64,000 nt of DNA, from positions 22,444,001 through 22,508,000 of the forward strand of contig NC_088860.1 in the NCBI RefSeq assembly GCF_963853765.1, written 5' to 3'. Positions within the stretch are counted from its first letter, which is position 1; each line of letters starts with the position of its first letter. Source of the stretch: Magallana gigas (lineage: Eukaryota). Position numbers and translations under genes: made by a program. The notes under the pieces were generated by a model, which was given only the letters and a program-made list of their open reading frames with translations, was not told the origin of the DNA and did not search any database. Below are positions 13,291 through 57,393 of this stretch, piece after piece.

Positions 13291-15784
13291 TTTTCACAAA
13301 TGAATTTAATAATACCGGTTTTTATTAAATCACAAATAACATTCTACATTGAAACACAGTTATATTGAAATATAATTATTACTACTTAGTTTGTTTTTGC
13401 TGGCTTTCATTTAAAAAATAAATAAATGTTATTTTTTTTCCAGGTACATCTATGAAATGAGGAACTTTCAAAACAAAGTTTTTAAAATTGGATTTTTCCC
13501 ATCAGTTATTTTCAATCGATTACAAAAAATCAGATATGTGTGTGCGTGCGCATGCATGTGCATGCGTGAGCTTGTGGTTTTTCTTCTCTGTAACTTGATT
13601 AAATTAGACGAATTTATGCTAGAAAATTAATCATAAAGAGGTGTAATGCTTTTTCCTTTTATTTCGCTTACACAGGTATTTGTAAGGAGATTACCCTTTA
13701 CTATAGATAAACACAGGTACTTGTCGTCATGTGATTTTTTAAACCTAGATACTGAATTTTAAATGATGTATCTATCAATTAATTTGTCATAAAATCAGGG
13801 AACCTGCATCAAGAACTGAATATGTTAAACCTTATGTATAAATTCAGCTGCTATTCTGAATTGTGATTACTTCCCGCAAAATGTGATGAACAAGGATTGG
13901 TTATTTGACTGTACATGTAGTATTATTCAACGTGCTCATATTCATACTCATACTTAGAATTTAACAAGAGATTTTTGAGAAAAAGAAATCCAGCATATTA
14001 GATACATATATTCTTATCATACTTTGAATAAAAATTGATATGCATATATATTGTAAGAAATATAACTGAGACACCTGGTTATTGTGTTTAAGGGGATATG
14101 CGGCCATCTTGTATATTTGAGGATAAGTATGTCAACATTAATTTTTTTTTTTAACTGGCTTGTTTTTTACCGCAACTGACAAAACTGTTGTCAAAAGATT
14201 TAAAAGCAAAACATATGAGATTCTACATGTTGTTTTGTATGCAAATTATGCATTAATATCAGGACAATGTCTTTTTAATCAATTAAAGCAACTGTCGAAC
14301 TGCGCATCTACAGACTCATTTTGAAGATCTAAAAATATAAAGGGGGTTCATTGTCCTCTCTACAACAAAGAACTCTGTGGAGTTTATGAATAGCAAAAAA
14401 TTACGACAGTGTGCTAGATAAACATCTCTACCAGGTAATGGAAATATTTATATTATATAACACTGTTTCAATGGGAATTTCTCTTTAAAATATGAAAAAT
14501 TCATCAAGATTATTGAAAGCTTTAAAACTTTTGTTTATTATTGACTTTACAATTACAACATAAAGACAAAGATAGAACAAGATTTATAGGATGAGTTAAA
14601 TGTATTTGAAATCTGTGCATACTGTCATAGTAGGGAATACAAACGATGGAGCAATTTTCATCGAATAATATACTTATGTATATGCTACAAAAAAAGTAAT
14701 GAAAGAGACATCGAATGTGTCATTAGCCTCTCTTTCCTAACTCTCTTACATTTGTCATTAATAAAAGTGCATGTACAAACACAAATACAAAAAAACAAAA
14801 CCAAACAAAATACCGTATATAACTAGTTTAATCAAAGATTAAAAAAGTAATTTACTTGTGTATGATTACAACAAATCAATTACCAACTTATTATTATATT
14901 ATAATCTATAGTCATAGTTCTGAAAAAAAACACCCATAAAACAAACATAGGAAAGGTATAGATTTGTGTATCAAATTCAACACGGATTGTTTTGAATTGA
15001 CATTACTTTTTTCTATAAAATATAACGTCGATACAGGTGTTCTAAGTATAGACTGGATTTTTCTTGTTCTTAAAATAGATCCCATGCCGACTGATAAAAA
15101 TGGGCACTCAATTTTGAGGCAAAGTCACAATATAAATGTGCAATATTCAAACTTTTCCTGAACAGAGGACACCAATGAACCCCCTACAGATTTTATTTTA
15201 GATTTTTAAATCTTCAAAATAAGTTTGTAGCTGCCCAGTTCTGAATAGGGAAATTGCTGTATTCATTTAATCCATTGATAAATATTTTCTACAAATTTAC
15301 AATGTTTTCTTCTTCGAATAATATAATTGTCCAGATTCACCATTCGATGATCGCAACGTTCGGTGATTAACCGGTTAACCGAGTACTCACTAAAAATACC
15401 TATATATTCAATGTGTAGAAAGATTAAAAACAAGAAATGAACGTGTTTACAGATCATTATTTTAAGATTATATAAAAAATGAAGATGGTTGCGATCACAA
15501 AAAAGTTAACACATAACTTACATGAGTAAGTGGGTTTTTTTAAAACCTAATAAATAAAAAAAACGCCATTTGATGTTTCAAGGTTACTTTTTAATGTTTA
15601 AACAACTTAGTCTTATATTAAATCTAGGGGTTTTGACATGTTCTTCTGATAGAGACTATTATTTCAAGCAAAATAAGAAATATTTGGAAACACGTTTGTT
15701 GAAATGTAAATTTGTGGGTCAGAATAATCTAAGAAATTATTTAAGATTGATCTCCCACAAACAATGATGTGATTCGCGATGTGT

Positions 15785-16065
15785 CTACAACATATGCTTT
15801 ACTGCAAATATCTCAACTTCACAGAAATGAAGGTGGCAGTTGACATTATTATTTAGCTGAAAGTGGACAAATTGTCCAACGATGCATTGTTGACATTCAA
15901 CTATCTTGGATACATATTGGCTGTCTGTATTGCAGAGAGTCATTTCGCTTGTGTTTGTTGTCAAACCAATTCTGATGTCATAGAACGCACATGTAGTGTC
16001 CGGGTAACCTGAAATCAGAAGAAGAGCAATTCAGTACGAAACTCATTAAATCACTTGTTGTTTTT

Positions 16066-16120
<55 letters not shown>

Positions 16121-16939
16121 CATAGTGAATGATATACATATAGCACAGGGAAATTCCCTATATTAGAGCTCCACCTCCGCCCCGGCTGGGGCTTGAACTC
16201 GTGACCTCTGGAACCCACTCTCATAGCAATGAGTGGCCACTGCGCTAACCATTCGGCCATCTAGGCACAGATGGCTAGCCTAGATGGATGAATGGTTAAC
16301 GTGGTGGCCGCTCGTGGCCGCTAACCATTCGGCCATCTAGACATATATGGCAAGCCTAAATGGCCGAATGGTTAGCGCGGTGACCGCTCATTGCTAGGGG
16401 AGTGGCCTCCAGAGTTCATTTGTGACGCGCCAAGCAAAAACCTCCCTTAACTGAAAATATTGACAATTTCAGCATCTTATTGATTCTAATAAAGCTTTTT
16501 CTTCTTCTTCCAATGTTATACAGCATTACATATATTTCTCATTGTTAGGGTGTTGCAAGAACGCATTCAAATGAAGAAGTATATGCTTTGACGTCGATCG
16601 CACAAATAAAGGCTACATAATTGTTGCTATATTATTAACTACAGATATTTTAATAACAGTCCCTTAATCTTATTTTGCTTCAGTGTATTTCAAACAATGA
16701 ATAATAGTTTTTGACATATGGAATGGTACAAATGATTCAAATTCATAAAATATATAATGAATTGAATCTCTGTATAGGAACATATTTTTCTTTCTTATAA
16801 AACATATTATTTCTACACAATGTTGCAGAATGAAAGGCAGAATATAGCTGAGATCATCATTTAGAAAACGGTTCACATTTTATAACCTTGCGATTGAAAC
16901 AATTATACTGTCTCAAAAAGAATACAATAGTATATCTTG

Positions 16940-16987
<48 letters not shown>

Positions 16988-19782
16988 ATTTGATATTTTT
17001 CCGTTAATATTTTTTTAAATGTTGGATAACAAATTAACAATGACAGAAATACCTGGAAATTGCAAAAAAAAAAAAAAAGAAACAAAAGACTTTTTATTAT
17101 AAAAATGCATTTAGTTTATCTCCTACACTGTGAAATTACTGAACATATTACACAATTTTAAAGTCAATTGTTATTTAATTTTCATGGGTTTCATTGGCAT
17201 GTGAAACAGGAGAATGAAAATGGCGGAGATATAAAGGTATAATACAATGTATTTTCCTGTGTGAAAGGAATGCACAATCGTTTGAATGAATATCGATGAA
17301 ACATTAATCAAATCAATGAGAATATAAATGAATTAAAATTGTTTTATTTGCATGTGGATAGACATTAGTTTCAACGAAAAATCTAAACAATGGGAGTAGA
17401 AATAATTTAGAGTAGTTTCTTTCTGCATGTGCATCTGCCAAGCGGAAGGACAGAACAATTTGTTCTTAAAGAAATATATGTTTTATTATTTTCATTGGGG
17501 GGGGGGGGGGGGGCAATAATACAAAATAACAAAAGTATTTCTATAAAGAATCTGACCATAAAATAAACAATTTAATATTGTCACAATAGGATAAAAAAGG
17601 AGTTACATTTTCCATACCATGAAAACATGTATTTTTTCTAAAAATCAAAAATTTGGGATTTAGTCTTGAAACGCAATCTTTTGGGTGTTATAAATGCAAA
17701 TATATTGAATATTTCAGAAAAGATTTCTCATAGATTATGATTAGCTTTTGTACACTGCAACACATGTATCTCGCGATGATTTTTTTCTGTTTTGTTGAGC
17801 GACGCCATAAACTACCATACGCGAATTGAAGTTGAAAGTTATTTCTAGAAATGCGTGTATTGCCTTTAGGTGCCTAGTTCAGTGCTTGAATTCAGTTTAT
17901 CAATAGTGTATACGTGCAGCATGCATGTATCTTCATATGTTAACATTAATTAGATTAATTAAAAGTTTAAAGTAAATCTGAAAATCGATATTTTAAATCA
18001 AAAGGTGTTAAATTACATCGTGTTTTCAGATCACAGAAAAAAAATGAGACTTGAAAGCGCCCGACATTTACATTCGATCGTCAGTTCAGCATCGCGTCTG
18101 CTTAGAAACCAAAGATGATTGGAATTATGGTAATTTATTAATTTATCATCAAATATTTTTGGTATTTCAGTAAATTCCTTTATATTTTATTGAGGTCAAA
18201 TAAATGAAAATAACGTATCGTTTTAAATTTAGCTTGGAAGCCTCGATATTTTTCTTGTTCCGCAAAACTAAGAACGACATTCTTTTTTATCTATTTAAAA
18301 AGGACAAATATTTCAACACTTGTTTAGCCTTAATCTATTTATTACTAAATTACGCTATTTTCTAATAAAGAAAATCATTGATGATGCAAAACTTTTTTGA
18401 GGCATAGCAGAATTTCCTTCATAACTATGTAATTGATTCTTAAAACACAGAACTGAAACACATATGGCAGATAAGAATACTTAATATACAGCGTTTACGA
18501 TGTTGTGATACATAGACACGTATTTTAACGTTACGTCATAATTAAGATAAGGCCCTTATCTTACCTCATCATAACGGTGGTTTTTGCTTGGTGCGTCACA
18601 TTTGTAAAAAAACAAAACCTTTAGACCATACTGTAATCTAAATACGTAATTTTCATATTTATATATTTGAATTCAAGTCAGAAGGTATATTTGTACCTAA
18701 ATTATAGACAACGACGTTCAACTGTCTGATTTGGTAAACTTGACCTAGATCGATCAGTATCCATGGTTTCATCTCGATATATGTTGATCCACAAATTCCA
18801 AACGCTCTCCCAGAATTCCCATCAACGATGTACTTTACATCATGATCTGCATAATTTTCTTCGTAGACGGAAGAAGAGTGAACAGTTTTACTCAATGCAA
18901 CGTTCTCAGGGGCAACTGAAGACAAAAAAATGCTCGGGAATAAACAAAAAGCAAAGACATATCATTCTAATGGTTGGTGTTGCAATGCCACTTTAGATCN
19001 NNNNNNNNNNNNNNNNNNNNNNNNNNNNNNNNNNNNNNNNNNNNNNNNNNNNNNNNNNNNNNNNNNNNNNNNNNNNNNNNNNNNNNNNNNNNNNNNNNNN
19101 NNNNNNNNNNNNNNNNNNNNNNNNNNNNNNNNNNCACCGTTGGTAAAGCCTACCCATTTTAGATGAGGATCGGATGCATTTTTTCTCACTTGTATGCAAA
19201 GCTATGCATTCAACATTCTGAACACTGCACTTTGTTACACATGAAAAAAAGAAATAACCATATCAACTAAAAGTTACAGTTGATAGAATTAGAACAAGAT
19301 ATTACAATGAAATTCTCTCTCTCTCTCTCTCTCTCATTATATTTAGTTTTTATATTTTCGGAGTTATTGAAAAACATTTAGAGAGACAATCCTTCTATCT
19401 CGGATTCTCTTTTTCACTTCTCTTTGATAATGCTTACATTTTCTTCCAAGTGCTCCGTGGCAATATCGAGATATTCAAATTCAACTGCGGACTGTAACAG
19501 AGATGGATAAGAACTGTGGCCCACAAAATTCAGCTCGCACGCCAAAGACTTCGAATTATAGTTCACTGACCGACATCCAGTGTTTTGGAGACATTTGTCT
19601 ATGCACATGCGTATCCCACAGTATGGAACTATCTTGAATGTCGCATTCAGCCTTTTGCCTTCTTCTCTTTTCAAAATATACTCAAATTGGTTCGATAGAA
19701 TTAGAAGTGGATAAATTGTTATGATAAATCCGCAACATAAATTCATTCTGTATATATGTTGGTACATAGTACATATTTTCAT
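15785..19782 (-). CDS. Secreted PAN/Apple + F-type-lectin-fold protein, copy C, intact
   Basis: Exons 19782 (or a downstream ATG)-19438, 19229-19154, 18915-18697, 16008-15785. Phases 0/1/1, GT-AG, no stops. N-gap only in an intron. Confidence 0.88.
16069..16416. mobile_element. tRNA-SINE cluster: (TA)n tail, minus-strand SINE, and internally duplicated head-to-head heads
   Basis: CATTCGGCCATCTAGGC-ACAGATGGCTA-GCCTAGATGGATGAATGG at ~16250-16295, with a near-repeat of the same arrangement at ~16325-16375. Confidence 0.75.
19000..19134. other. Assembly gap (N run); the equivalent position in copy D holds a (GA)n tract
   Basis: 135 N. Flanks match ~33260 and ~33345, which enclose (GA)n. Confidence 0.95.
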
Positions 19783-20051
19783 TGCACTAACATGATGATG
19801 TTGAAACTACGTCACTCTGCAAATGCCAATCGATGTTTCATGTGCTCTTGGTATATAGATGTACTGCCACAAGAAAAACTTGATATAAAAATCTATCTGA
19901 GATCAATGAAATAAATGTCAAACGCAAATGCTACAGTATGTTACATAATTCATTTCTGTGTTTCATTTTACTGCAATGTCATAATTTTGCTGATTAATTA
20001 AAACTTCATTACGTACGTCTGGGTTGGCAAGCCTCGCGAATATATACATTA

Positions 20052-21440
20052 AGGACATATCGCATGTTTTTCAATTTTCGGATTTTTTTTAAATAAAATC
20101 ATTCTATACTCATTATAAATGAAGTTTATTATCGTTTTCATAAAATAATCTGGCTATTTCGTGAGTTTGAAAGCGATGGAATTCAAATGTCGCGATATGC
20201 ATATTTTCTCTCTCGGTCTATCCGCTATGATGTGTGACGTCATATGCGACCTCGAGCGAGAAGGTGCTGTTAGCCATCTTTGTAATTGGATTAGATTTAA
20301 ACGACAATTAAACTAATTATCACCTATTAAATTGTCGATAACGGGACATGATGGTTTTTTGTGCCCCCTATGGATGTTCTAGCCGTCAAAAATAGGGATT
20401 TTGACTGTTGTTTTTTTAAGTTTCCCTTACCATACAAAAGTATGCAGAAATCTTGCGACAAATAGGGGTCTATCTGTCGGCGAGAGGATTTATAAATAAA
20501 CATTCAATACATATATTATTAATTATATGGTATATTTTTAGTTTCATAAATAAATCGTATTTATTTTTCAAAGAGAAAAAATAGAAGTTTATGCACAGGG
20601 GGCTGTGTACAAAAGGCAAGTTCATCGGAGAAAAATAACAAGAGAGGACGCCATTTTGGATACCACCTTGCCTCATTAGACATGTTAGATGTTTTCTTAC
20701 TATACGTTCATGTATGCGTCGGTTTAGTATAAATGATTTCTTAATTCATAGCTCACCTCTGCAGAACCATAATATAAGTACGGTAGGTGAGATTTCTATG
20801 AGTTTTATTTTTTTGTGGGAGAAGTCAAGGATCGAGTTGTCCATATTGAATGTTTACGCGAGAAATAGAAAAAGTTTGTTGATATACATATATACGTAAA
20901 TGGATAAAAAAAATACGGAGATGGGATCTTACAGAGAAAACAACAATTAAGGAAAACGTTCTTGCCTGCTTTTATAATATATATTTATACAGTGTAATAT
21001 GGAGTAAACTGCTTACACGTCGATCAATTTGATCGTAAGGGGTTGCTGACTTCATCGTCGCTTCTATGGCAATATTATCTTTTTTTATCCGTACTAGTGG
21101 CTCAAACATGTACGACTGAATAATAAGATTCTTTTAATTTAGTCAACATGTATAAAACAACGTACATGGTGAATAAATGTCAAAATTTAAAGAAGATAAT
21201 GCTAATCCTATACAATTTATTTACAATCAGCTGTTCGAAGAAGGTCGCTTGTGACGTCACTGTACCACGTGACACGCTATCTAATTAAGGAGTTTATAAA
21301 CGATCGGGGCTATAATTTAAATTGACAATATGGCTAATTACCGTTTTTATACCGTTAAACTGTTAAAAGTAATTATGAGATACACAAGGAAGCCAAAAAA
21401 TGTAAAAGGTCCCATACTTTAGAAACATGCGATATGTCCT
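20052..21440. mobile_element. Non-autonomous TIR DNA transposon, ~1.39 kb, TTA flanks (PIF/Harbinger- or Kolobok-like)
   Basis: TTA|AGGACATATCGCATGTTT ... AAACATGCGATATGTCCT|TTA. Absent at the equivalent site in unit 2 (~34281). Confidence 0.85.
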
Positions 21441-22217
21441 TTATTTCAACTCGTTGGATAAAGCAAATATATAATCACCCAATTATAGATATCCTCTATA
21501 TATAATCAGCTCTTCGTTATCCCTCGGGATATTTTGTCTATGCGGATTTTTCTTTTCTATTTTTTTTTTCGCTAGACAATACCATATCATTACGTTGGAC
21601 ATTTTAATTACCAATATTTGAACACATTTTTGAATAACAAATGCAATTTGATTTGACACACGTATGTTTTTTTAAACTATAAATGGAATAGATATCTAAT
21701 CCTCTCCGATATGCTTATTTAAATATACAGTATTTTCTACTATTTTAATTACTAAAATGATGCTTACCAATAAGGTTTCTATATTATAAGAACAAATTTG
21801 AATTAGTAACATTTAGTACTTTATGTTCGGAATATGAATCTTATGTCTGAAAATGTGAAAAAGATTTGTTGTTCGTACTTTATATTTCTAATTATTCAGC
21901 CATGTATTTACTAAGTAAGAAAAAGTCAAGTCATGGCTTTGAATATATGATTCAAAATGTTCTACATAAAGTGGAGAATTTTTATTGTGCTGCGAAATAA
22001 TTCATATACATCATATGTATGCTGGCATTTTAACATTTATTGTAATGGAGTTTTCGCCTTGGCAAGATTCACGTTGCTGAATAAAAAGTGTTCATTTACT
22101 GGAACAGCAATTCCGTTTATTGTGCATGCCTAATCCCGGTTTCCTCTTTGTAAGTATCTTCTTTACGAGATTTGCGCTTGACTTCAACCTTGGTAAACAT
22201 AACGGTATATACCTTAA

Positions 22218-22954: not shown

Positions 22955-23060
22955 GGAATATGAAGATTTATTCCCTCGAAAAAAAAACAACCAAATTTCT
23001 CTCGGGCGAAGCCCTCGGAATATATGATTTTTCTTGTGGGAATAATTTTTTATAAAAGTA
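22955..23060. repeat. Degenerate palindrome centred on GGGC-GAA-GCCC
   Basis: TTATTCCC...GGGC GAA GCCC...GGGAATAA; loop at 23008-23010. Confidence 0.6.
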
Positions 23061-26708: not shown

Positions 26709-27528
26709 TCTATACTACTATATTAAGATAATAGACTCAAATTTTTGGGCTTTAATACCGATAAATCGGAAGAGAACCGTCTTTTGTTTTATGTATTTTA
26801 AACATCATTGGTACGTGAAGATTACCAATTTGATTTTATTTTTTCTCAATCAAGCTTCGCTAATTATTAATCAACGAAACTTCATTAAGTAATTCCGGAA
26901 ATCATCTGATTTTTGGGGATTTTACAATCTTGCGCATGCGCATTACATTCACGCTAAATCAAAGGAGGCTCTTTATTTTATGTTTCCACAATATCATATT
27001 TGAAAAACTCAGAAACAATAAAACAAATGCGTATAAATTTTCATTGGATATTTTTTTCTGTTCATCAAAAAATACGGGAGATAACTCGTACACAGTGCAT
27101 TTACAATAAAAAAAAAAACGAGAGTTTCGAATGTCAACATGGTGTATAAAAAACGTTGTTGAATAAATGTTGAATTCTGCAATTACAGAATTAAACTTTT
27201 CGAAGAAAGGTATTTACAGCTTCAAAGTGGTTTGTTAAGAACATTTTGACTGTTATTTTCAATGAAACTTTATTTATGTTCTCCAAAATCGTTTTGGAGC
27301 GATTCTGCAATTTTCTGCTACATTATTAATATGGGAGGCATTTTATCTGTGGTGAAGGCCTTTCCCGATACACAGTTAGATTATTTCAACGCAGCAGAGT
27401 GTAGTGAAATTAATAGCATTATTGTAGGCTTAAAGCTTGGTTATACAAAATGTCAACAATATACGGATTGCCGATGTATCTATTCCGATATGCAATGTCA
27501 ACCCGTACACACACGGGTCAAAGTCTAG
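26709..27528 (+). mobile_element. Non-autonomous Helitron, 820 bp
   Basis: A|TCTATACTACTATATT ... ACCCGT-ACACAC-ACGGGT hairpin ... CTAG|T. No TSD. Absent at ~14818 in unit 1. Confidence 0.9.
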
Positions 27529-29793
27529 TATGTATAACTAGTTTAATGAAAGATTAAAAAAAGTAATTGACTTGCGTATGATTACAACAAATCAATTACC
27601 AACTTAGAAAGAATCTTCTAAAATATTTTCACGGCTGTAAGGGGAATGTGCGGCCATCTTGTACATTTAGGGATAAGAATTTAAACAATTCTTGAACTGG
27701 ATTGTTTTTGTCCGAAACTGGCCAAAAATATGAAGTCCTACATGTCATTCTGTTTGAAAAGTAAGCATGAAAAGACAAGACAATGCTACACACTTATTTG
27801 AAGGTTTAAAATATGAAGGGGGTTCATTGGTGTCCTCTCTAAAACCATTTATATATATTTGTCTGTGTCTATGGAGGTACATTGTAGGTATGGGGGTATA
27901 TTTTTATTGTAATATATTTACACAATGTATACTTTTTTAATTTAAGACAATCACTTTTTGGACCCCTACCCCACTTCTAAAAAGAATTTATGATAACCTA
28001 TAATTATCATTCTGAAAAAAAAACACCATAAAACAAACATAGGACAGGTATAGATTTGTGTATCAAATTCAACACGAATTGTTTTGAATTGACATTACTT
28101 TTTTCTATAAAAATATAACGTCAATGTGTCTCTATAGACACAGGTGTTCTAAGTATAGACTGGATTTTTTTTGTTCTAAAGATAGATCCCATGCCGACTG
28201 ATAAAAATGGGTACCCTATTTTGAGGCAAAGTCCCAATATAAATGTGCAATATTCAAACTTTTCCTGACCAGAGGACACCAATGAACCCCCTACAGATTT
28301 GTTCAGATTTTAAAATCTTCAAATAAGTCTGTAGCTGCACAGTTCTGATGAGGGAAATTGTTGTATTCATTTAATGCCATTGGTAAATATTTTACAAATT
28401 TACCATGGTTTTTTTTCTTCGATTAAGATAATTGTGCAGATTCACTATTCGATAATCGCATCGTTCGGTGGTTAACCGGTTAACCGAATACTCACTAAAA
28501 ATACCTATGAATAATGTGTAGTAAGATTAAAAACAAGAAATGAACGTGTTTACAGATCATTATTTTAAGTTTATATAAAAAATGAAGATGGTTGCGATCA
28601 CAAAAAAGTAAACACATAACTTACATGAGTAAGTGGGTTGTTTTTTAAATCTAATAGATAAAAGAAAATTCCATTTGATGTTTCAAGGTCACTTCTTAAT
28701 GTTTAAACAACTTAGTCTTGAATTTAGGAGTTCTGACATTTTTCTCCTGATAGAGACTATTATTTCAAGCAAAATAAGAAATATTTGGAAACACGTTTGT
28801 TGAAATGTAAATTCGTGGGTCAGAATAACCTAAGAAATTAATTAACATTGATCTCCCACGAACAATGATGTGATTCGCGATGTGTCTACAACATATGCTT
28901 TACTGCAAATATCTCAACTTCACAGATATGAAGGTGACAGTTGACATTATTATTTAACTGAAAGTGGACAAATTGTCCCACGATGCATTGTTGACATTCA
29001 ACTATCTTGGATACATATTGGCTGTCTGTATTGCAGAGAGTCATTTCGCTTGTGTTTGTTGTCAAACCAATTCTGATGTCATAGAACGCACATGTAGTTT
29101 CCGTCTGAATACAGGAGAAGAGCAATTCAGTTGGCTTGCCTATATGGCCGCTCATTGCTAGGGGAGTGGCCTCCAGAGTTCAAGGCCAGAGATCTCGTAA
29201 GATCATTTGTGACGCGCCAAGCAAAAACCTCCCTTAACTGAAAATGTTGACAATTTTAGTATTTTATTGATTCTAATAAAGCTGTTTTTTCTTCTTCCAA
29301 GGATATACAGCATTACATATATTTCTCATTGTTAGGGTGTTGCAAAAACGCATTCAAATGAAGAAGTATATGCTTTGACGTCGATCGCACAAAAAAAGGA
29401 TAGTACATAATTGTTGCTAAATTATTAACTACAGATATTTCAATAACAGTCCCTTAATCTTATTTTGATTTAGTGTATTTCAAACAATGAATAATAATTT
29501 TTGGCATATGGAATAGTACAAATGATTCAAATTCCTAAAATATATAACAAATTAAATCTCTGTATAGAAACATATTTTTTTCTTTTTTATAAAACATATT
29601 ATTTCTACACAATGTTGCAGAATGAAAGGCAGAATATAAATGAGATCATCATTTAGAAAACGGTTCACATTTTATAACCTTGCGATTAAAACAATCATAC
29701 TGTCTCAAAAAGAATACAATAGTTTATCTTGAGTAATTTTAAAAACGATTTGCTTTCTTTAATATTGTACATACATTTACTTATGTTGTATAT

Positions 29794-29796
<3 letters not shown>

Positions 29797-29853
<57 letters not shown>
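29797..29853. repeat. (CT)n microsatellite (paralogous tract at ~16941-16987)
   Basis: Direct reading. Confidence 0.95.
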
Positions 29854-29858
<5 letters not shown>

Positions 29859-31108
29859 GATATTTTTCTGTTAATATTTTTTTAAATGTTGGATAACAAA
29901 TTAACAATGACAGAAATACCTGGAAACTGCATTTTTTCAAATTGATTTTAAAAATAAAAATTGATAGGAAAAAAAGAAACAAAAGACTTTTTATTTTAAT
30001 AATGCATTTAGTTTATCTCCTACACCGTGAAATTACTGAACATATTACACAATTTTAAAGTCAATTGTCATTTAATTTTCATGGATTCCATTGGCATGTG
30101 AAACAGGAGAATGAAAATGGCAGAGATATAAAGGTATAATACAATGTATTTTCCTGTGTGAAAGGAATGCACAATCGTTTGAATGAATATCGATGAAACA
30201 TTAATCAAATCAATGAGAATATAAATGAATTAAAATTGTTTTATTTGCATGTGGATAGACATTAGTTTCAACGAAAAATCTAAACAATGGGAGTAGAAAT
30301 AATTTAGAGTAGTTTCTTTTTGCATGTGCATCTCCCAAGCGGAAGGACAGAACAATTTGTTCTCAAAGAAATATATGTTTTATTTTCATTGGGGGGGGGG
30401 GGGGGATAATACAAAATAACCAAAGTATTTTTTTTTTATAAAGAATCTGACCATTAAAAAAAACAATTTAACATTGTCACAATAGGATAAAAAAGGAGTT
30501 TCATTTTCCATACCATGAATACATGTATTTTGTCTAAAAATCGAAATTTGGGATTTAGTCTTGAAACGCATTCTTTTGGGTGTTATAAATGCAAATATAT
30601 TGAATATTTCAGAAAAGATGACTCATCGATTATGATTAGCTTCTATCCACTGCAACACCTGTATCTCGCGATGATTTTATTCAGTTTTGTTGAGCGACGC
30701 CATAAACTACCATGCGCGAATTGAAGTTGAAAGTTATTTCTAGAAATGCGTGTATTGGCTTTAGATGCCTAATTCAGTGCTTGAATTCAGTTTATCAATA
30801 GTGTATAAATGCAGCATGCATGTATCTTCATCTGTTTACATTAGTTAGATACTATCATATAAAAGTTTCTTTTTTGTTCTATTTATTGCTTCAGTTATAG
30901 CTAAAGTACAGAACATTCGACATGCTTACTACAACACAACTATCTAGTCAATAAAATACAGGAACTAAAAATGTTTTTCATCTGAAAATATATTTGTTTG
31001 TTGGTTTAAAGTAAAACTGTAAATTGATATTTTAAATCAAAAGGTCTTAAATCACATCGTGTTTTCAGATCACAGAAAAAAATGAGACTTGAAAGCGCCC
31101 GACATTTA

Positions 31109-31581
31109 TAGTCTGTCCCAAGATATTTATGCTGCATATTTGAACGATTTTTAATAAAAATACACATACCTGTGACTGAAGTGCAATTAAAATCGACGAA
31201 AGGGAAAATTCCCAAGATAACTTCATTCACACATTATCATTTTTCCCTCGTAAAAATTCACATGAACGAAAACAGATTTCCTACGGAGATTTATAATGGG
31301 GAATGTTGACATCTTTTCTCCATTCGGAAATACTCGGGACCCCTCGCGCAATTTTTCAACGTTATCATCCGGGCGTCTTCATCTCCTTGGCAATGGAAAA
31401 ACCTCGTAGACTTTTTATTTTTAGCCCTGTACTGATACCCGACGAGCGAGAGGGGGCGTTTCAAAGGGGAAATCTTGGGATTTTTTCATACTATTGAATG
31501 AACATCGTCTGAACCAAGAGGTATTTATAAATATTGAATAATTTAAGAAAATATGCGGCAAAAATATCTTGGGACAGACTA
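31109..31581. mobile_element. MITE with TA TSD (Tc1/mariner-type)
   Basis: TA|TAGTCTGTCCCAAGATATTT ... AAATATCTTGGGACAGACTA|TA. Empty TA site in unit 1 at ~18069. Confidence 0.9.
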
Positions 31582-31790
31582 TAGATTGGATCGTCAGTTC
31601 AGCATCGCGTCTTCTTAGAAACCAAACATGATTGGAATTATGATAATTTATCATCAAATATTTTTGGTATTTTTGTAAATTCCTTTATATTTTATTTAGG
31701 TCAAATAAATGAAAATGACGCATTGTTTTAATATTTAAATTTAGCTAGGAAGCCTCGATATTTTTCTTGTTCCGCACAACCAAGATCGAC

Positions 31791-31823
31791 TTTATTACTT
31801 ATTAGGTTAGTTACTGACTCACT

Positions 31824-31856
<33 letters not shown>

Positions 31857-31877
31857 CGGCTCGGCGAAGCCGAGCCG

Positions 31878-31910
<33 letters not shown>

Positions 31911-32473
31911 AGTGAGTCAGTAACTAACCTAATAAGTGTTTTGTTTTCCCGAGGACTAACAAGCGACATATATATTCACAAATAGCGATGAAGCCACGTA
32001 CAAGATGCCTAACATCTTGTCAAATTTAACTCATTCAAGCTCTTCAAAATTTTCAATCTCACCTTTCAAATACTCTTTAAAAATCCTTGCTTCACCCATG
32101 TTTACTTACAATGTTTTGTTGATAATCAATTTTAAATGTTTTCTCCCTTTCCTCTGCAGAGATTTGAGCAAATTTCGACGCTGCCATTTTGTTCTGCTCC
32201 AGACAAAACAATGTGACGTCAATATTCAAAGGGCAACTACTCTAATTTTAAAGAATTTCAAAGGGCAACTACTCCAAATACTTTAAAAACTTACGGCATG
32301 CGGTTTATGTATTAAATACTATGAAATGTCGAAATGAGTAAGCGAAGCGTCGACCAATGACGGCCATATTGCCTAATATTATTTCTCACAGAACAAATAT
32401 AGAGATATATGAGGCAATCAGGTGCTATGTTTAAACCAATGAAAATGTGACATTTCAGTCCAAGGGAAAACAA
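31791..32473. mobile_element. TSD-less insertion beginning with a perfect 141-bp palindrome
   Basis: Absent at ~18275 in unit 1. Arms 31797-31865 and 31869-31937, loop GAA. Internal TTGTTTTCCCGAGGACT is an imperfect inverted copy of the terminal AGTCCAAGGGAAAACAA. Confidence 0.85.
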
Positions 32474-32882
32474 TCTTTTTTATCTATTTAAAAAGGACAA
32501 ATATGTCAACACTTGTCTAGTCTTAATCTAATTATTACTAAATTACGCTATTTTCTAATAAAGAAAATCATTGATGATGCAAAACTTTTTTAAGGCATAG
32601 CAGAATTTCCTTCATAACTATGTAATTGATTCTTAAAACACGGAAGTGAAACACGCATGGCAGATAATAATACTTAATATGCAGCGTTTACGATGTTGTG
32701 ATAATTAGACACGTATTTTAACGTTAGGTCATAATTAAGATAAGGCCCTTATCTTACCTCATCATAACGGTGGTTTTTGCTTGGCGCGTCACATTTGTAA
32801 AAAAAAAACAACAAAAAACCTTTAGACCATATTGGAATCTAAATACGTAATTTTCATATTTAAATATATGAATTCAAGTCAG

Positions 32883-32886
<4 letters not shown>

Positions 32887-32928
<42 letters not shown>
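32887..32928. repeat. (TA)n tract between two copies of a ~25-bp duplication near the copy D exon 3 donor
   Basis: TGAATTCAAGTCAGAAGGTA(TA)n TTGAATTTAAGTTAGAAAGTCTAT; the motif is single-copy in copy C (~18670). Confidence 0.85.
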
Positions 32929-32931
<3 letters not shown>

Positions 32932-33276
32932 AATTTAAGTTAGAAAGTCTATTTGTACCTACTATTAAAGACAACGACGTTCAATTTTCTGATTTGGTAA
33001 ACTTGACCTAGATCGATCAGTATCCATGGTTTCATCTCGATATATGTTGATCCACAAATTCCAAACGCTCTCCCAGAATTCCCATCAACAATGTACTTAA
33101 CATCATGATCTGCATAATTTTCTTCATAGACGGAAGAAGAGTAAACAATTTTACCCAATGCAACGTTCTCAGGGGCAACTGAAAACAAAAAAATGCTCGG
33201 GAATAAACAAAAAGCAAAGACATGTCATTCTTATGGTTGGTGTTAGAATGCCACTTTAGATCAGACGTATTCAAGG

Positions 33277-33331
<55 letters not shown>

Positions 33332-35482
33332 GTAATTATCAATTGGTCACCGTTGGTTAAAGCCTACCCATTTTAGATGAGGATCGGATGCATTTTTTCT
33401 CACTTGTATGCAAAGCTACGCATTCAACATTCTGAACACTGCACTTTGTTACACATGAAAAAAAGAAATAACCATATCAACTAAAAGTTACACTTGATAG
33501 AATTAGAACAAGATATTACAATGAAATTCGTTCTCTCTCTCCCTCTCTCTCTCTCATTATATTTAGTTTTCATATTTTCTGAGATATTGAAAAACATTTA
33601 GAGAGACAATCCTTCTATCTCGGATTCTCTTTCTCACTTCTCTTTGATACTGCTTACATTTTCTTCCAAGTGCTCGGTGGCAATATGGAGATATTCAAAT
33701 TCAACTGCGGACTGTAACAGAGATGGATAAGAACTGTGGCCCACAAAATTCAGCTCGCACGCCAAAGACTTCGAATTATAGTTCACTGACCGACATCCAG
33801 AGTTTTGGAGACATTTGTCTATGCACATGCGTATTCCACAGTATGGAACTATCTTGAATGTCGCATTCAGCCTTTTGCCTTCTTCTCTCTTCAAAATATA
33901 CTCAAATTGGTTCGATAGAATTAGAAGTGGATAAGTTGTTATGATAAATCCGCAACATAAATTCATTTTGTATATATGTTGGTACATAGTACATATTTTT
34001 ATTGCACTAACATGATGTTGTTGAAACTACGTCACTCTACAAATGCTTATCGATGTTTCATGTGCTCTTAGTAGATATACTGCCACAAGAAAAACTTGAT
34101 ATAAAAATCTATCTGAGATCAATGAAATAAATGTCAAACGCAAATGCTACAGTATGTTACATATTTCATTTCTGTTTTTCATTTTACTAAAATGTCATAG
34201 TTTTGCTGAATTAATAATTCCCTTTTTCCATTAAAACTTAATTACTTACGTCTTGGTTGGCAAGCCTCGCGAATATATACACCATTTCAACTCGTTGGAT
34301 AAAGCAAATATAAAATCACACAATTATAGATATCCTCTATATATAATCAGCTCTTCAATATCCCTCGGGATATTTTGTCTATGTGGATTTTCTTTTTCTT
34401 TTTTTCTTTTTTTTGGGGGGTTGTTGGAAGGATGTGAGTAACGTGATTTTAAAACCCCGACTGTCATTTTAATCAAAACATAAATAAATATAATTAGTTT
34501 GATAAATACCCCGATGATGTCAACGTTAAATTATAAATATTGATTTATGTTCGTTTATATCTGGCTTCAAAAATTCTTAAATCGCTAGACAATATCATAT
34601 CATTACGTTAGACATTTTAATTACCAATATTTGAACACATTTTTGAATAATAAAATTAATGCAATTTGATTTGACACACGTATGTTTTTTAAAACTATAA
34701 ATGGAATAGATATCTAATCCTCTCCGATATGCTTATTTAAATATACAGTATTTTCTACCATTTTAATTACTAAAATGATGCTTACCAATAAGGTTTCTAT
34801 ATTATAAAAACAAATTTAAATTAGTAACATGTAGTACTTTAAGTTCGGAATATGAATCTTATGTCTGAAAATGTGAAAAAGATTTGTTGTTCGTACTTTC
34901 TGTTTCTTATTATTCAGACATTTACTAAGTAAGTAAAAGTCAAGTCACGACTTTGAATATATGATTCAAAATGTTCTACATAAAGTGGAGATATTTTTTG
35001 TGCTGCGAAATAATTCATATACATCATATGTATGCTGGCAAAACATTTATTGTTATGGAGTCTTCGCCTTGGCAAGATTCACGTTGTTGAATAGAAAGTG
35101 TTCATTTACTGGAACAGCAATTCCGTTTATTGCGCATGCCTAATCACGGTTTCCTCTTTGTAGGTATCTTCTTTAGGAGATTTGCGCTTGACTTCAACCT
35201 TGGTGGGAATAAACATAACGGTATATACCTTAGTAATCAAGCATGGACTCATTAATTATTAAAAATTGTTAATTATAAAAAGACACACCGGTAAGCTTAA
35301 GTTGCACATTTATATGCAAAATTCATGAAATTAAATTATGATTTCACAGTTCTCAGAAATGAAGTCCATTAAAACATACTTTTGATACGTGGTTGTTGAG
35401 AATATTTAAGTATGTTTCCGAGGCCCAGACTGGCATAAATATCTTCAAAAGAAAAATGTGAATCGTTTAAATCAAATAATAA

Positions 35483-56412: not shown

Positions 56413-57393
56413 TCATCCTTAGGCAAAGGGGATTCAAAATTGTGAAAATTATGGGCCACACCCGTTTTCAAGGGGAGATAATTAGAAATTAATGAAAAAT
56501 TTCGAGTAATTTTCAAAAATCTTCTTCTCAAGAACCATAAAGCCAGGAAAGCTGAAACTTGTGTGGAAGCATCCTCAGGTAGTGTAGATTCCAAGTTGTG
56601 AAATCCATGACCCCTTTAAAAATCTTCTTCCCAGAAGCTGATCAGCCCTGAAAGCTGAAACTTCACAATGGGGGCTCGAAGTTTTACATAGGAATATATA
56701 GAGTAAATCTTTAAAATTCTTCTTCCCAGAAACTAATCAGCTAGGAAAGCTGAAACTTGTGTGGAAGCATCCTCAGGTAGTGTAGATTCCAAGTTGTGAA
56801 AATCATGATCACTGAGGGTAGGGTGGGGCACAATGGGGGCTTGAAGTTTTACATAGGAATATATAGAGTAAATATTTAAAAATTTTCTTCTCAGAAACTA
56901 ATCAGCCAGAAAAGCTGAAACTTGTGTGGAAGTATCCTCAGGTAGTGTAGATTCAAAGATGTGAAAATCATGATCCCTTGGGATAGGGTGGGGCCACATT
57001 TTGGGGCGGGGTTAAAGTTTTACATAGGAATATATAGAGAAAATCTTTTAAAATCTTCTCAGAAACTAATCAGCCAGATGATTCTTTATAATTGTTAAGA
57101 CTTTGGCTCCAGGGCAATTCTTCGGCCTCACAAGAAGGTTCAGAGTTTGATGTAGCTTTATATTACATATATAAACAATTGTTAAGGATCTGTTTGAGAA
57201 CTGCAATACTCAACATGTGTTATGACCATAAAATCATCCTGTTAGAAAAGGGACTAATGATTATAAACATAAGAATATCCAGGGGGAAAATGGATTTTAT
57301 TTATACAGGATCTACGTGTATTATTGTACATTGTCCAGATTGTTTTTTATATGACTCCATTAAGCTGATTTTATCATACCTATTGTTCCTCAT

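Follow-up and report, generated by a model that had tools for sequence, protein, structure and literature searches.

A 681-bp non-coding element in the genome of Magallana gigas is one recent copy of a high-copy oyster transposon family, and the enzyme that moves this family in trans is probably a tyrosine recombinase of Crypton type, which would recognise a folded junction hairpin. The element lies in a 64-kb stretch of DNA that was analysed as a whole and is referred to here as the window. The window is AT-rich, with about 32% G+C, and the genome searched is a 564-Mb assembly of 29 contigs. A preliminary description of the window had proposed a non-autonomous element without target site duplication (TSD), moved by a Crypton-like tyrosine recombinase or by a hairpin or single-stranded DNA mechanism rather than by a DDE transposase. 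The non-autonomous and TSD-less character stands, DDE cut-and-paste is unlikely, and the Crypton-like option is now the best supported, because the target has two arms around a 6-bp spacer, the joined ends of the element are built alike, and one copy abuts a Crypton exactly. The mechanism itself is what we infer from these features.

The boundaries of the element were set by aligning 30 genomic copies, in which similarity begins and stops at the same bases. They agree with a second source of evidence inside the window, a paralogous unit located ~13-14 kb upstream (unit 1), which is roughly 87-94% identical across blocks to the unit carrying the element (unit 2) and is without the whole insertion. 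In the alignment, unit 2 blocks 31582-31790 and 32470-32891 correspond to 18069-18278 and 18277-18690 of unit 1. The insertion of ~683 bp relative to unit 1 that had been described before is borne out by both the alignment and the empty site, with 31793-32473 as its best extent. The features of the locus, in window positions, are as follows.

31793-32473, minus strand: whole element, 681 bp, reading 5' TTGTTTTCCC ... AAGTAATA 3' on the minus strand, with ends base-exact across the 30 genomic copies.
31791-31792, unstranded: dinucleotide at the junction, its origin uncertain; plus-strand reading TT (filled allele), AT (unit 1) or AA (empty allele).
18275-18284, unstranded: paralogous empty site in the duplicated unit 1, GACAT/TCTTTT, with the break at 18279/18280.
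32474-32483, minus strand: left side of the host target, consisting of the half-site ATAA (32480-32483) and the spacer AAAAGA (32474-32479).
32457-32473, minus strand: 5' terminal inverted repeat, core TTGTTTTCCCTTGGACT, with weaker similarity out to 32438.
31941-31957, minus strand: 3' subterminal inverted repeat, core AGTCCTCGGGAAAACAA (minus strand), extending to 31976.
32226-32274, unstranded: two direct repeats TTCAAAGGGCAACTACTC of 18 nt each, 31 nt apart, inside the element, read from the sequence.
32095-32187, minus strand: 31-codon frame starting MAASKF, which ends GTAAGT-like and is preceded by CCAAT-like and TGACGTCA motifs.
48693-49317, minus strand: second copy, old, 82-83% identical to the family and cut just past the hairpin loop.

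The paralogous units belong to a segmental duplication (about 14800-22200 and 27500-35200) with blocks ~87-97% identical, mostly 91-94%. The two units differ by several transposon insertions and by microsatellite lengths, which makes the duplication a useful source of empty sites. A second insertion private to unit 2, of 473 bp (31109-31581) and absent from unit 1, starts with TAGTCTGTCCC, has 38-nt terminal inverted repeats (92%), is flanked by a TA duplication (31107-31108 and 31582-31583) and resembles a Tc1/mariner-type MITE.

The element is non-autonomous: a long open reading frame (ORF) is absent, and its family is one of high copy number. Its 31-codon frame may be the relic of a first exon. 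A full protein search with this frame returned five short look-alike ORFs and one unrelated repeat protein, there was no Pfam match, and most family copies have a stop codon within the frame. The same genome contains 1,520 candidate copies. The 40 copies that were scored are near full length, each with the palindrome described below, and are 84-98% identical to the element, nearly all at 94% or above. When one mismatch was allowed, the 27-nt 5' end TTGTTTTCCCTTGGACTGAAATGTCAC had 457 genome matches and the 28-nt 3' end had 474. A metagenome scan for the 27-nt end gave 0 matches. The second copy in the window had been placed at 48646 and described as lacking the left arm; the outer (terminal) arm is indeed missing, and the placement is corrected to 48693-49317. 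This copy was also considered as a separate subfamily, which was rejected as it has no relatives closer than the main family.

Contigs from oyster sequencing runs contain the insertion site in both states. In a contig of run X2, from another oyster, position 31788 is followed directly by 32470; this is an empty allele, which has 2 nt in common with either side. Contigs of runs X1 and X17 cross from the flank over 31790/31791 into the element and represent filled junctions, and a contig of run X15 ends at 31790. The empty allele may represent the ancestral state, or it may have arisen by excision or by a microhomology deletion. Because the insertion is both present and absent in oyster contigs, the family was probably active recently.

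The 3' part of the element (minus strand) is dominated by a palindrome, and its features are as follows.

31869-31937, unstranded: inner arm of the 141-nt palindrome, 69 nt.
31866-31868, plus strand: loop GAA, closed by C-G (GC-GAA-GC).
31797-31865, unstranded: outer (terminal) arm, in which bases 31857, 31861 and 31862 deviate from the family and give a perfectly paired tip.
31793-31796, minus strand: final 4 nt (minus strand AATA), separating the palindrome from the terminus; an internal loop in the joined form.

The arms (69 + 3 + 69 nt) are 100% complementary, so the mismatch-free 141-bp palindrome with a GAA triloop reported in the preliminary description is real in the window copy. As single-stranded DNA, either strand folds with about -84 kcal/mol, z near -27 compared with shuffled sequences. 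The emphasis formerly placed on perfection is misplaced, since the perfect tip is a single-copy oddity and all 29 other examined copies are mismatched near the tip. Stem pairs 65 and 66 are mismatched in 29/29 of these copies, and pair 61 in 28/29 (the exception is L005). The usual family tip on the plus strand, as in copy L007, is GA-GGC-GAA-GCC-GA, with a T.G (or T.T) pair and tandem G.A/A.G pairs. On the opposite strand, the same positions are pyrimidine-pyrimidine clashes, and the cap is therefore strand-specific.

Within the palindrome, the window copy differs from the family majority at three positions only, 31857, 31861 and 31862 (element positions 617, 613 and 612). All three lie in the outer arm, and with each deviant base a Watson-Crick pair is regained. 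In the 564-Mb genome, the perfect 27-mer tip has a single occurrence. Judging from this pattern, three coordinated changes within 6 nt represent a conversion rather than independent mutations: the three outer-arm bases took on the sequence that pairs with the inner arm, for which mismatch correction or repair, or template switching, within the folded hairpin is the most likely cause. It is also conceivable that the perfect tip is an assembly or polishing error and that the true locus has the usual GA/AG mismatches, which would leave the family itself real. The uniqueness of the 27-mer is consistent with an error, and short-read contigs over the region cannot resolve the tip. However, the changes are confined to one arm with pairing restored at each, the remaining palindrome equals the family majority, and an inverted repeat of 141 nt is presumably short relative to long reads. 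We consider an error highly unlikely.

The loop and its closing pairs are exactly the motif of the d(GCGAAGC) mini-hairpin, on the window plus strand, the stability of which has been described (PMC13037366). Here the motif caps a 69-bp stem, and unlike in the mini-hairpin its own stability matters little for folding; its role is likely that of a recognisable tip. Several hairpin pieces break at this tip. Solo or rearranged pieces in L026 (~1425-1501) and L028 (~1386-1470) are outer arms that end at the GAA cap or just past it, the old window copy at 48693 likewise stops just past the loop, and the genomic copy at C5:3204707 has an internal deletion ending in the hairpin tip. Breakage or template switching seems to be concentrated at the cap.

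Genome searches based on the cap gave 7 matches with one pattern and 28 with another. About 24 of these 28 tips (e.g. C1:75247094) read A-GGC-GA-GGC-GAA-GCC-GA-GCC-T, with an A-T pair in place of the T.G or T.T of the studied family. Going by the tips, they may represent a related family with a compensatory stem change. None of the cap-search matches lies beside a listed recombinase gene. The window contains two further hairpins of related appearance. A long palindrome at 45521-45701 has 77-nt arms that are 90% complementary with 27 nt between them; on the minus strand its tip is GCC-C(GAA)G-GGC and its base contains AAGTAATAAGG, resembling the AAGTAATA end. No ORF of 70 aa or more with the look of a recombinase was found near it. 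A small isolated hairpin at 22996-23022, CTCGGGC-GAA-GCCCTCGG, has a GGCGAAGCC core, which is the only other match to this core in the window (0.05 expected by chance).

The palindrome is directly followed, inwards, by an imperfect inverted copy of the far terminus, as had been described: 31941-31976 and 32438-32473 are 72% identical over 36 nt, with a core of 15/17. The inverted repeats of the element are thus asymmetric, one being at the 5' terminus (base 1) and the other 149 nt inside the 3' end. Two known classes were tried and rejected on the structure of the ends. DDE-type MITE or foldback elements have symmetric terminal inverted repeats and a TSD, and here one repeat is internal and there is no TSD. 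Canonical Helitrons have 5' TC and 3' CTRR and insert between A and T, and the ends here are TTGTTTT... and ...GTAATA.

To examine the target, we aligned the flanks of 28 independent sites, 22 of them outside AT microsatellites. Target duplication of any length is absent at all of them, so the lack of an obvious TSD first remarked on at the window locus extends to 28 other sites, and consistent TSDs across copies were not seen. Upstream of the TTG end, the logo of the 28 sites is A25 T24 A27 at -10 to -8, with W at -7 and -1. Past the GTAATA end, it is R25 T26 R28 T19 at +1 to +4. Contigs from four other oysters give the flank consensus ATA-Y before TATTAC (plus strand), in agreement with the logo. 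The target therefore has the form ATAT-N6-ATAT (ATAW-N6-RTAT), with two palindromic arms and a 6-bp spacer, and insertion takes place at one edge of the spacer. The left-side target sequence of the window copy is also present in the empty paralogue. In the paralogous empty sites of the window copy and of L063, both flanks are contiguous host DNA, and the base past the 3' end belongs to the host. Flanks of L006, L016, L022, L023, L025, L030, L063 and L066 consist of the same AT-rich repeat, with motifs like GATATTGTATAATATGATAC, entered at differing positions; the family favours this repeat for insertion, and paralogous empty sites were obtained from it.

Core sites of tyrosine recombinases consist of two inverted arms around a spacer (PMC3212892). 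What is found here agrees with a Crypton in two respects: there is no TSD and the insertion position is fixed relative to a two-arm target, and two inverted arms around a spacer within the 6-8-bp range are present in element and target alike. The joined element ends, ATAA-GTAATA-TTGT, fit the target logo at every informative position, for which the chance in AT-rich DNA is about 1 in 1,000 by a rough estimate. One feature of the junctions counts against the Crypton reading: the variable spacer is always on one side, whereas a simple two-strand exchange with heterologous spacers predicts either side.

The right junction of a resident copy, ATAA-GTAATA-RTAT, is itself a consensus target, and exact head-to-tail dimers are therefore predicted. 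Six exact head-to-tail junctions (GTAATA/TTGTTTT) were found in the genome, at the predicted position. Similar head-to-tail joints are present in contigs of other oysters and may be genomic dimers. The dimer junction L004 folds as one continuous hairpin of -87.9 kcal/mol. This begins with a terminal-repeat stem, in which the 5' terminal repeat pairs with the 3' subterminal repeat; a 4x3 internal loop follows at the precise position of the junction, then come the 69-bp stem and the GA/AG loop, and the GAA tip closes the structure.

Once joined head to tail, the two ends thus lie side by side, and the terminal repeat, subterminal repeat and palindrome fold into one hairpin. The junction point is at the small internal loop at the base of this hairpin, and its tip is the strand-specific cap, with tandem G.A pairs and the GAA triloop on the window plus strand. 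These observations suggest how the family may move. The enzyme would be a tyrosine recombinase, the intermediate would be circular or folded, and strand exchange would occur at a single position.

Another TSD-less route was weighed, namely a serine-recombinase-type 2-bp crossover, host repair acting on hairpins, or a DDE-type foldback or MITE with a missed TSD. Filled allele, empty allele and paralogue each have their own junction dinucleotide, a possible sign of a 2-bp crossover, and the several rearranged copies that break at the hairpin tip are also compatible with such a route. However, a TSD of any length is missing at the 28 sites and the inverted repeats are asymmetric, and we know of no serine-recombinase-type or like enzyme family linked to such elements in molluscs. 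A route of this kind is very improbable.

The family was first taken to consist of non-autonomous Helentrons (HINEs). A Rep/helicase (HUH) enzyme would then move it by way of a rolling-circle intermediate of single-stranded DNA, and the palindrome would be an overgrown 3' terminator hairpin. Non-autonomous Helentrons are the commonest DNA transposons in the Pacific oyster (PMC7492417, PMC4067079), and the architecture is like that of HINEs and Helitron2: 5' terminal and 3' subterminal inverted repeats followed by a 3' palindrome or hairpin, no TSD, tandem copies and high copy number (PMC4067079, PMC7492417). This shared layout also counts against the Crypton reading. In agreement with HINEs, a TSD is absent (28 sites and two sets of paralogous empty sites), and the 3' repeat, with a 17-nt core matching at 15/17, lies upstream of the palindrome, as does the 3' one of the 11-15-bp subterminal inverted repeats of HINEs. 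A Pfam search for Helitron_like_N gave >150 genome matches, with open frames up to 3,224 aa.

Other features differ from HINEs. Insertion is not at a TT dinucleotide: the junction is not T^T but W^R (T/A before, A/G after), and the R is host according to the paralogous empty sites. A two-arm palindromic target 10 bp wide is unlike known HUH enzyme usage. The 5' repeat starts at base 1, compared with 2-4 nt in for HINEs, and a 69-bp stem ending 4 nt from the terminus takes the place of a short stem-loop ~8-35 bp from the 3' terminus; stems are 5-10 bp in mite HINEs (PMC4067079). When 30 Rep loci were clustered and compared with the element by blastn, 0/30 shared sequence with it. Among the Rep places listed, there is no enrichment near copies, and none lies beside a listed element end. 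The exact abutment of one copy on a Crypton end, described below, is also at odds with a HINE. Because of the target logo, the empty sites and this abutment, the HINE reading was demoted, and we now regard it as unlikely. We note that the window also contains three tandem copies of a 165-nt unit (56466-56993; 65-92% identical), and that this unit size equals that of the satellite-like central repeats of oyster HINEs.

If the family is moved in trans by a Crypton-type recombinase, as we think probable, an autonomous partner with the same ends may be looked for, as the preliminary description had advised. No recombinase-encoding partner with the family's ends was found by position matching among listed ends or by pattern searches, which counts against the Crypton reading. 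For position matching, ~240 listed Phage_integrase/DUF3504 places were compared by hand with the element ends listed (the first 100 of ~460), and no pairing was seen except two or three neighbours. Recombinase-gene neighbours among the listed ends are at C1:12.61 Mb, C5:22.31 Mb (copy L014) and C3:53.70 Mb; in the two copies other than L014, the recombinase genes are on the same strand and start 2.5-4 kb past the end with the palindrome. Such neighbours are expected ~0.2 times among ~200 copies of known position, a post hoc estimate from partial lists. Negative-IUPAC patterns, which combine a shared anchor with divergent sequence beside it, gave nothing recurrent save a 1-nt deletion variant in many copies, and a few one-off rearrangements; two of these patterns used bases private to the window copy and were weaker.

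The neighbour of L014 provides a direct link to a Crypton. The 3' end of this copy (GTAATA) is joined without any intervening base to the 5' end of another element, of which seven genomic copies start at exactly that base. The neighbour contains QRICH1-type and DUF3504 domains, with Phage_integrase matches just downstream, which makes it a CryptonA-type transposon. The right arm of the target is formed by its first four bases, GTAT. The CryptonA 5' part covers L014 560-1493 (C5:22314902-22315835) on the minus strand and includes a short first exon, with GTAAGT after it, as well as a QRICH1-type N-terminal domain and DUF3504; at least 7 copies of this Crypton, 90-99% identical and sharing the first base, are present in the genome. 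Against the Crypton reading of the family, the terminal sequence of this adjacent Crypton is unrelated to that of the family, and no strong inverted copy of its own 5' end was found (none at 18/20 or more matching bases).

Among known systems, the closest are the non-autonomous Cryptons CryptonI-1N1_RPro and medaka CryptonA-1N1_OL and -1N2_OL (Kojima and Jurka 2011, PMC3212892), which are likewise non-coding and without TSD. They far outnumber their coding partners and are presumed to move by a circle and site-specific recombination (PMC3212892). Unlike the oyster family, they are plain deletion derivatives, and published animal Cryptons are said to be without terminal repeats of any kind, which is a further point against the Crypton reading (PMC3212892). 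The oyster family differs from them in its terminal and subterminal inverted repeats, its 141-nt palindrome with a structured cap and its ATAT-N6-ATAT target, and no parent element was found for it. Cg_HINE and DINE-1-type HINEs (PMC7492417, PMC4067079) have in common with the family the host species group, subterminal inverted repeats with a 3' palindrome, the lack of TSD, AT-rich targets and tandem copies. They differ in TT insertion, short palindromes, Rep/helicase partners and, often, a microsatellite and central tandem repeats of 150-180 bp; the oyster family does not follow the TT rule, has a 69-bp stem and lacks both a microsatellite and a satellite array.

A wider comparison may be made with bacteria. 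Integron attC sites and the attP(+) hairpin of CTX phage are folded single-strand substrates of tyrosine recombinases. The possible likeness is that imperfect inverted repeats would fold within one strand to form the site, with unpaired bases marking the strand, and that a single strand exchange would give insertion at one spacer edge. These sites, unlike the oyster element, are bacterial and have short hairpins. By this analogy, the family may represent a eukaryotic tyrosine-recombinase system in which the folded joined-end hairpin is the recombination site, with a strand-specific tandem-G.A/GAA cap and exchange at one edge of the 6-bp spacer. We put this forward tentatively, as a possibility that is somewhat doubtful.

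Of all classes of eukaryotic DNA transposons, Cryptons are the least understood, and their DNA recognition sites are poorly known. The Crypton literature gives no defined ends beyond a few bases of microhomology. Relative to this literature, the hairpin end, the pairing of the ends and the two-arm target are new for Cryptons. Were the family a Helentron passenger instead, its deviating target rule and its 141-nt terminator would make it unusual, and it would still be worth an entry in the oyster repeat library. If the family is driven by a Crypton, it provides hundreds of precisely bounded insertions, a two-arm target, a joined-end sequence and a folded crossover structure, and the recombination site could be tested directly, both in vitro and with population data. 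If the hairpin is in addition the recombination site, this would explain a passenger family that has reached about a thousand copies and is still mobile in living oysters, and the window copy, with its cap mismatches erased, would be a natural mutant of the recognition signal.
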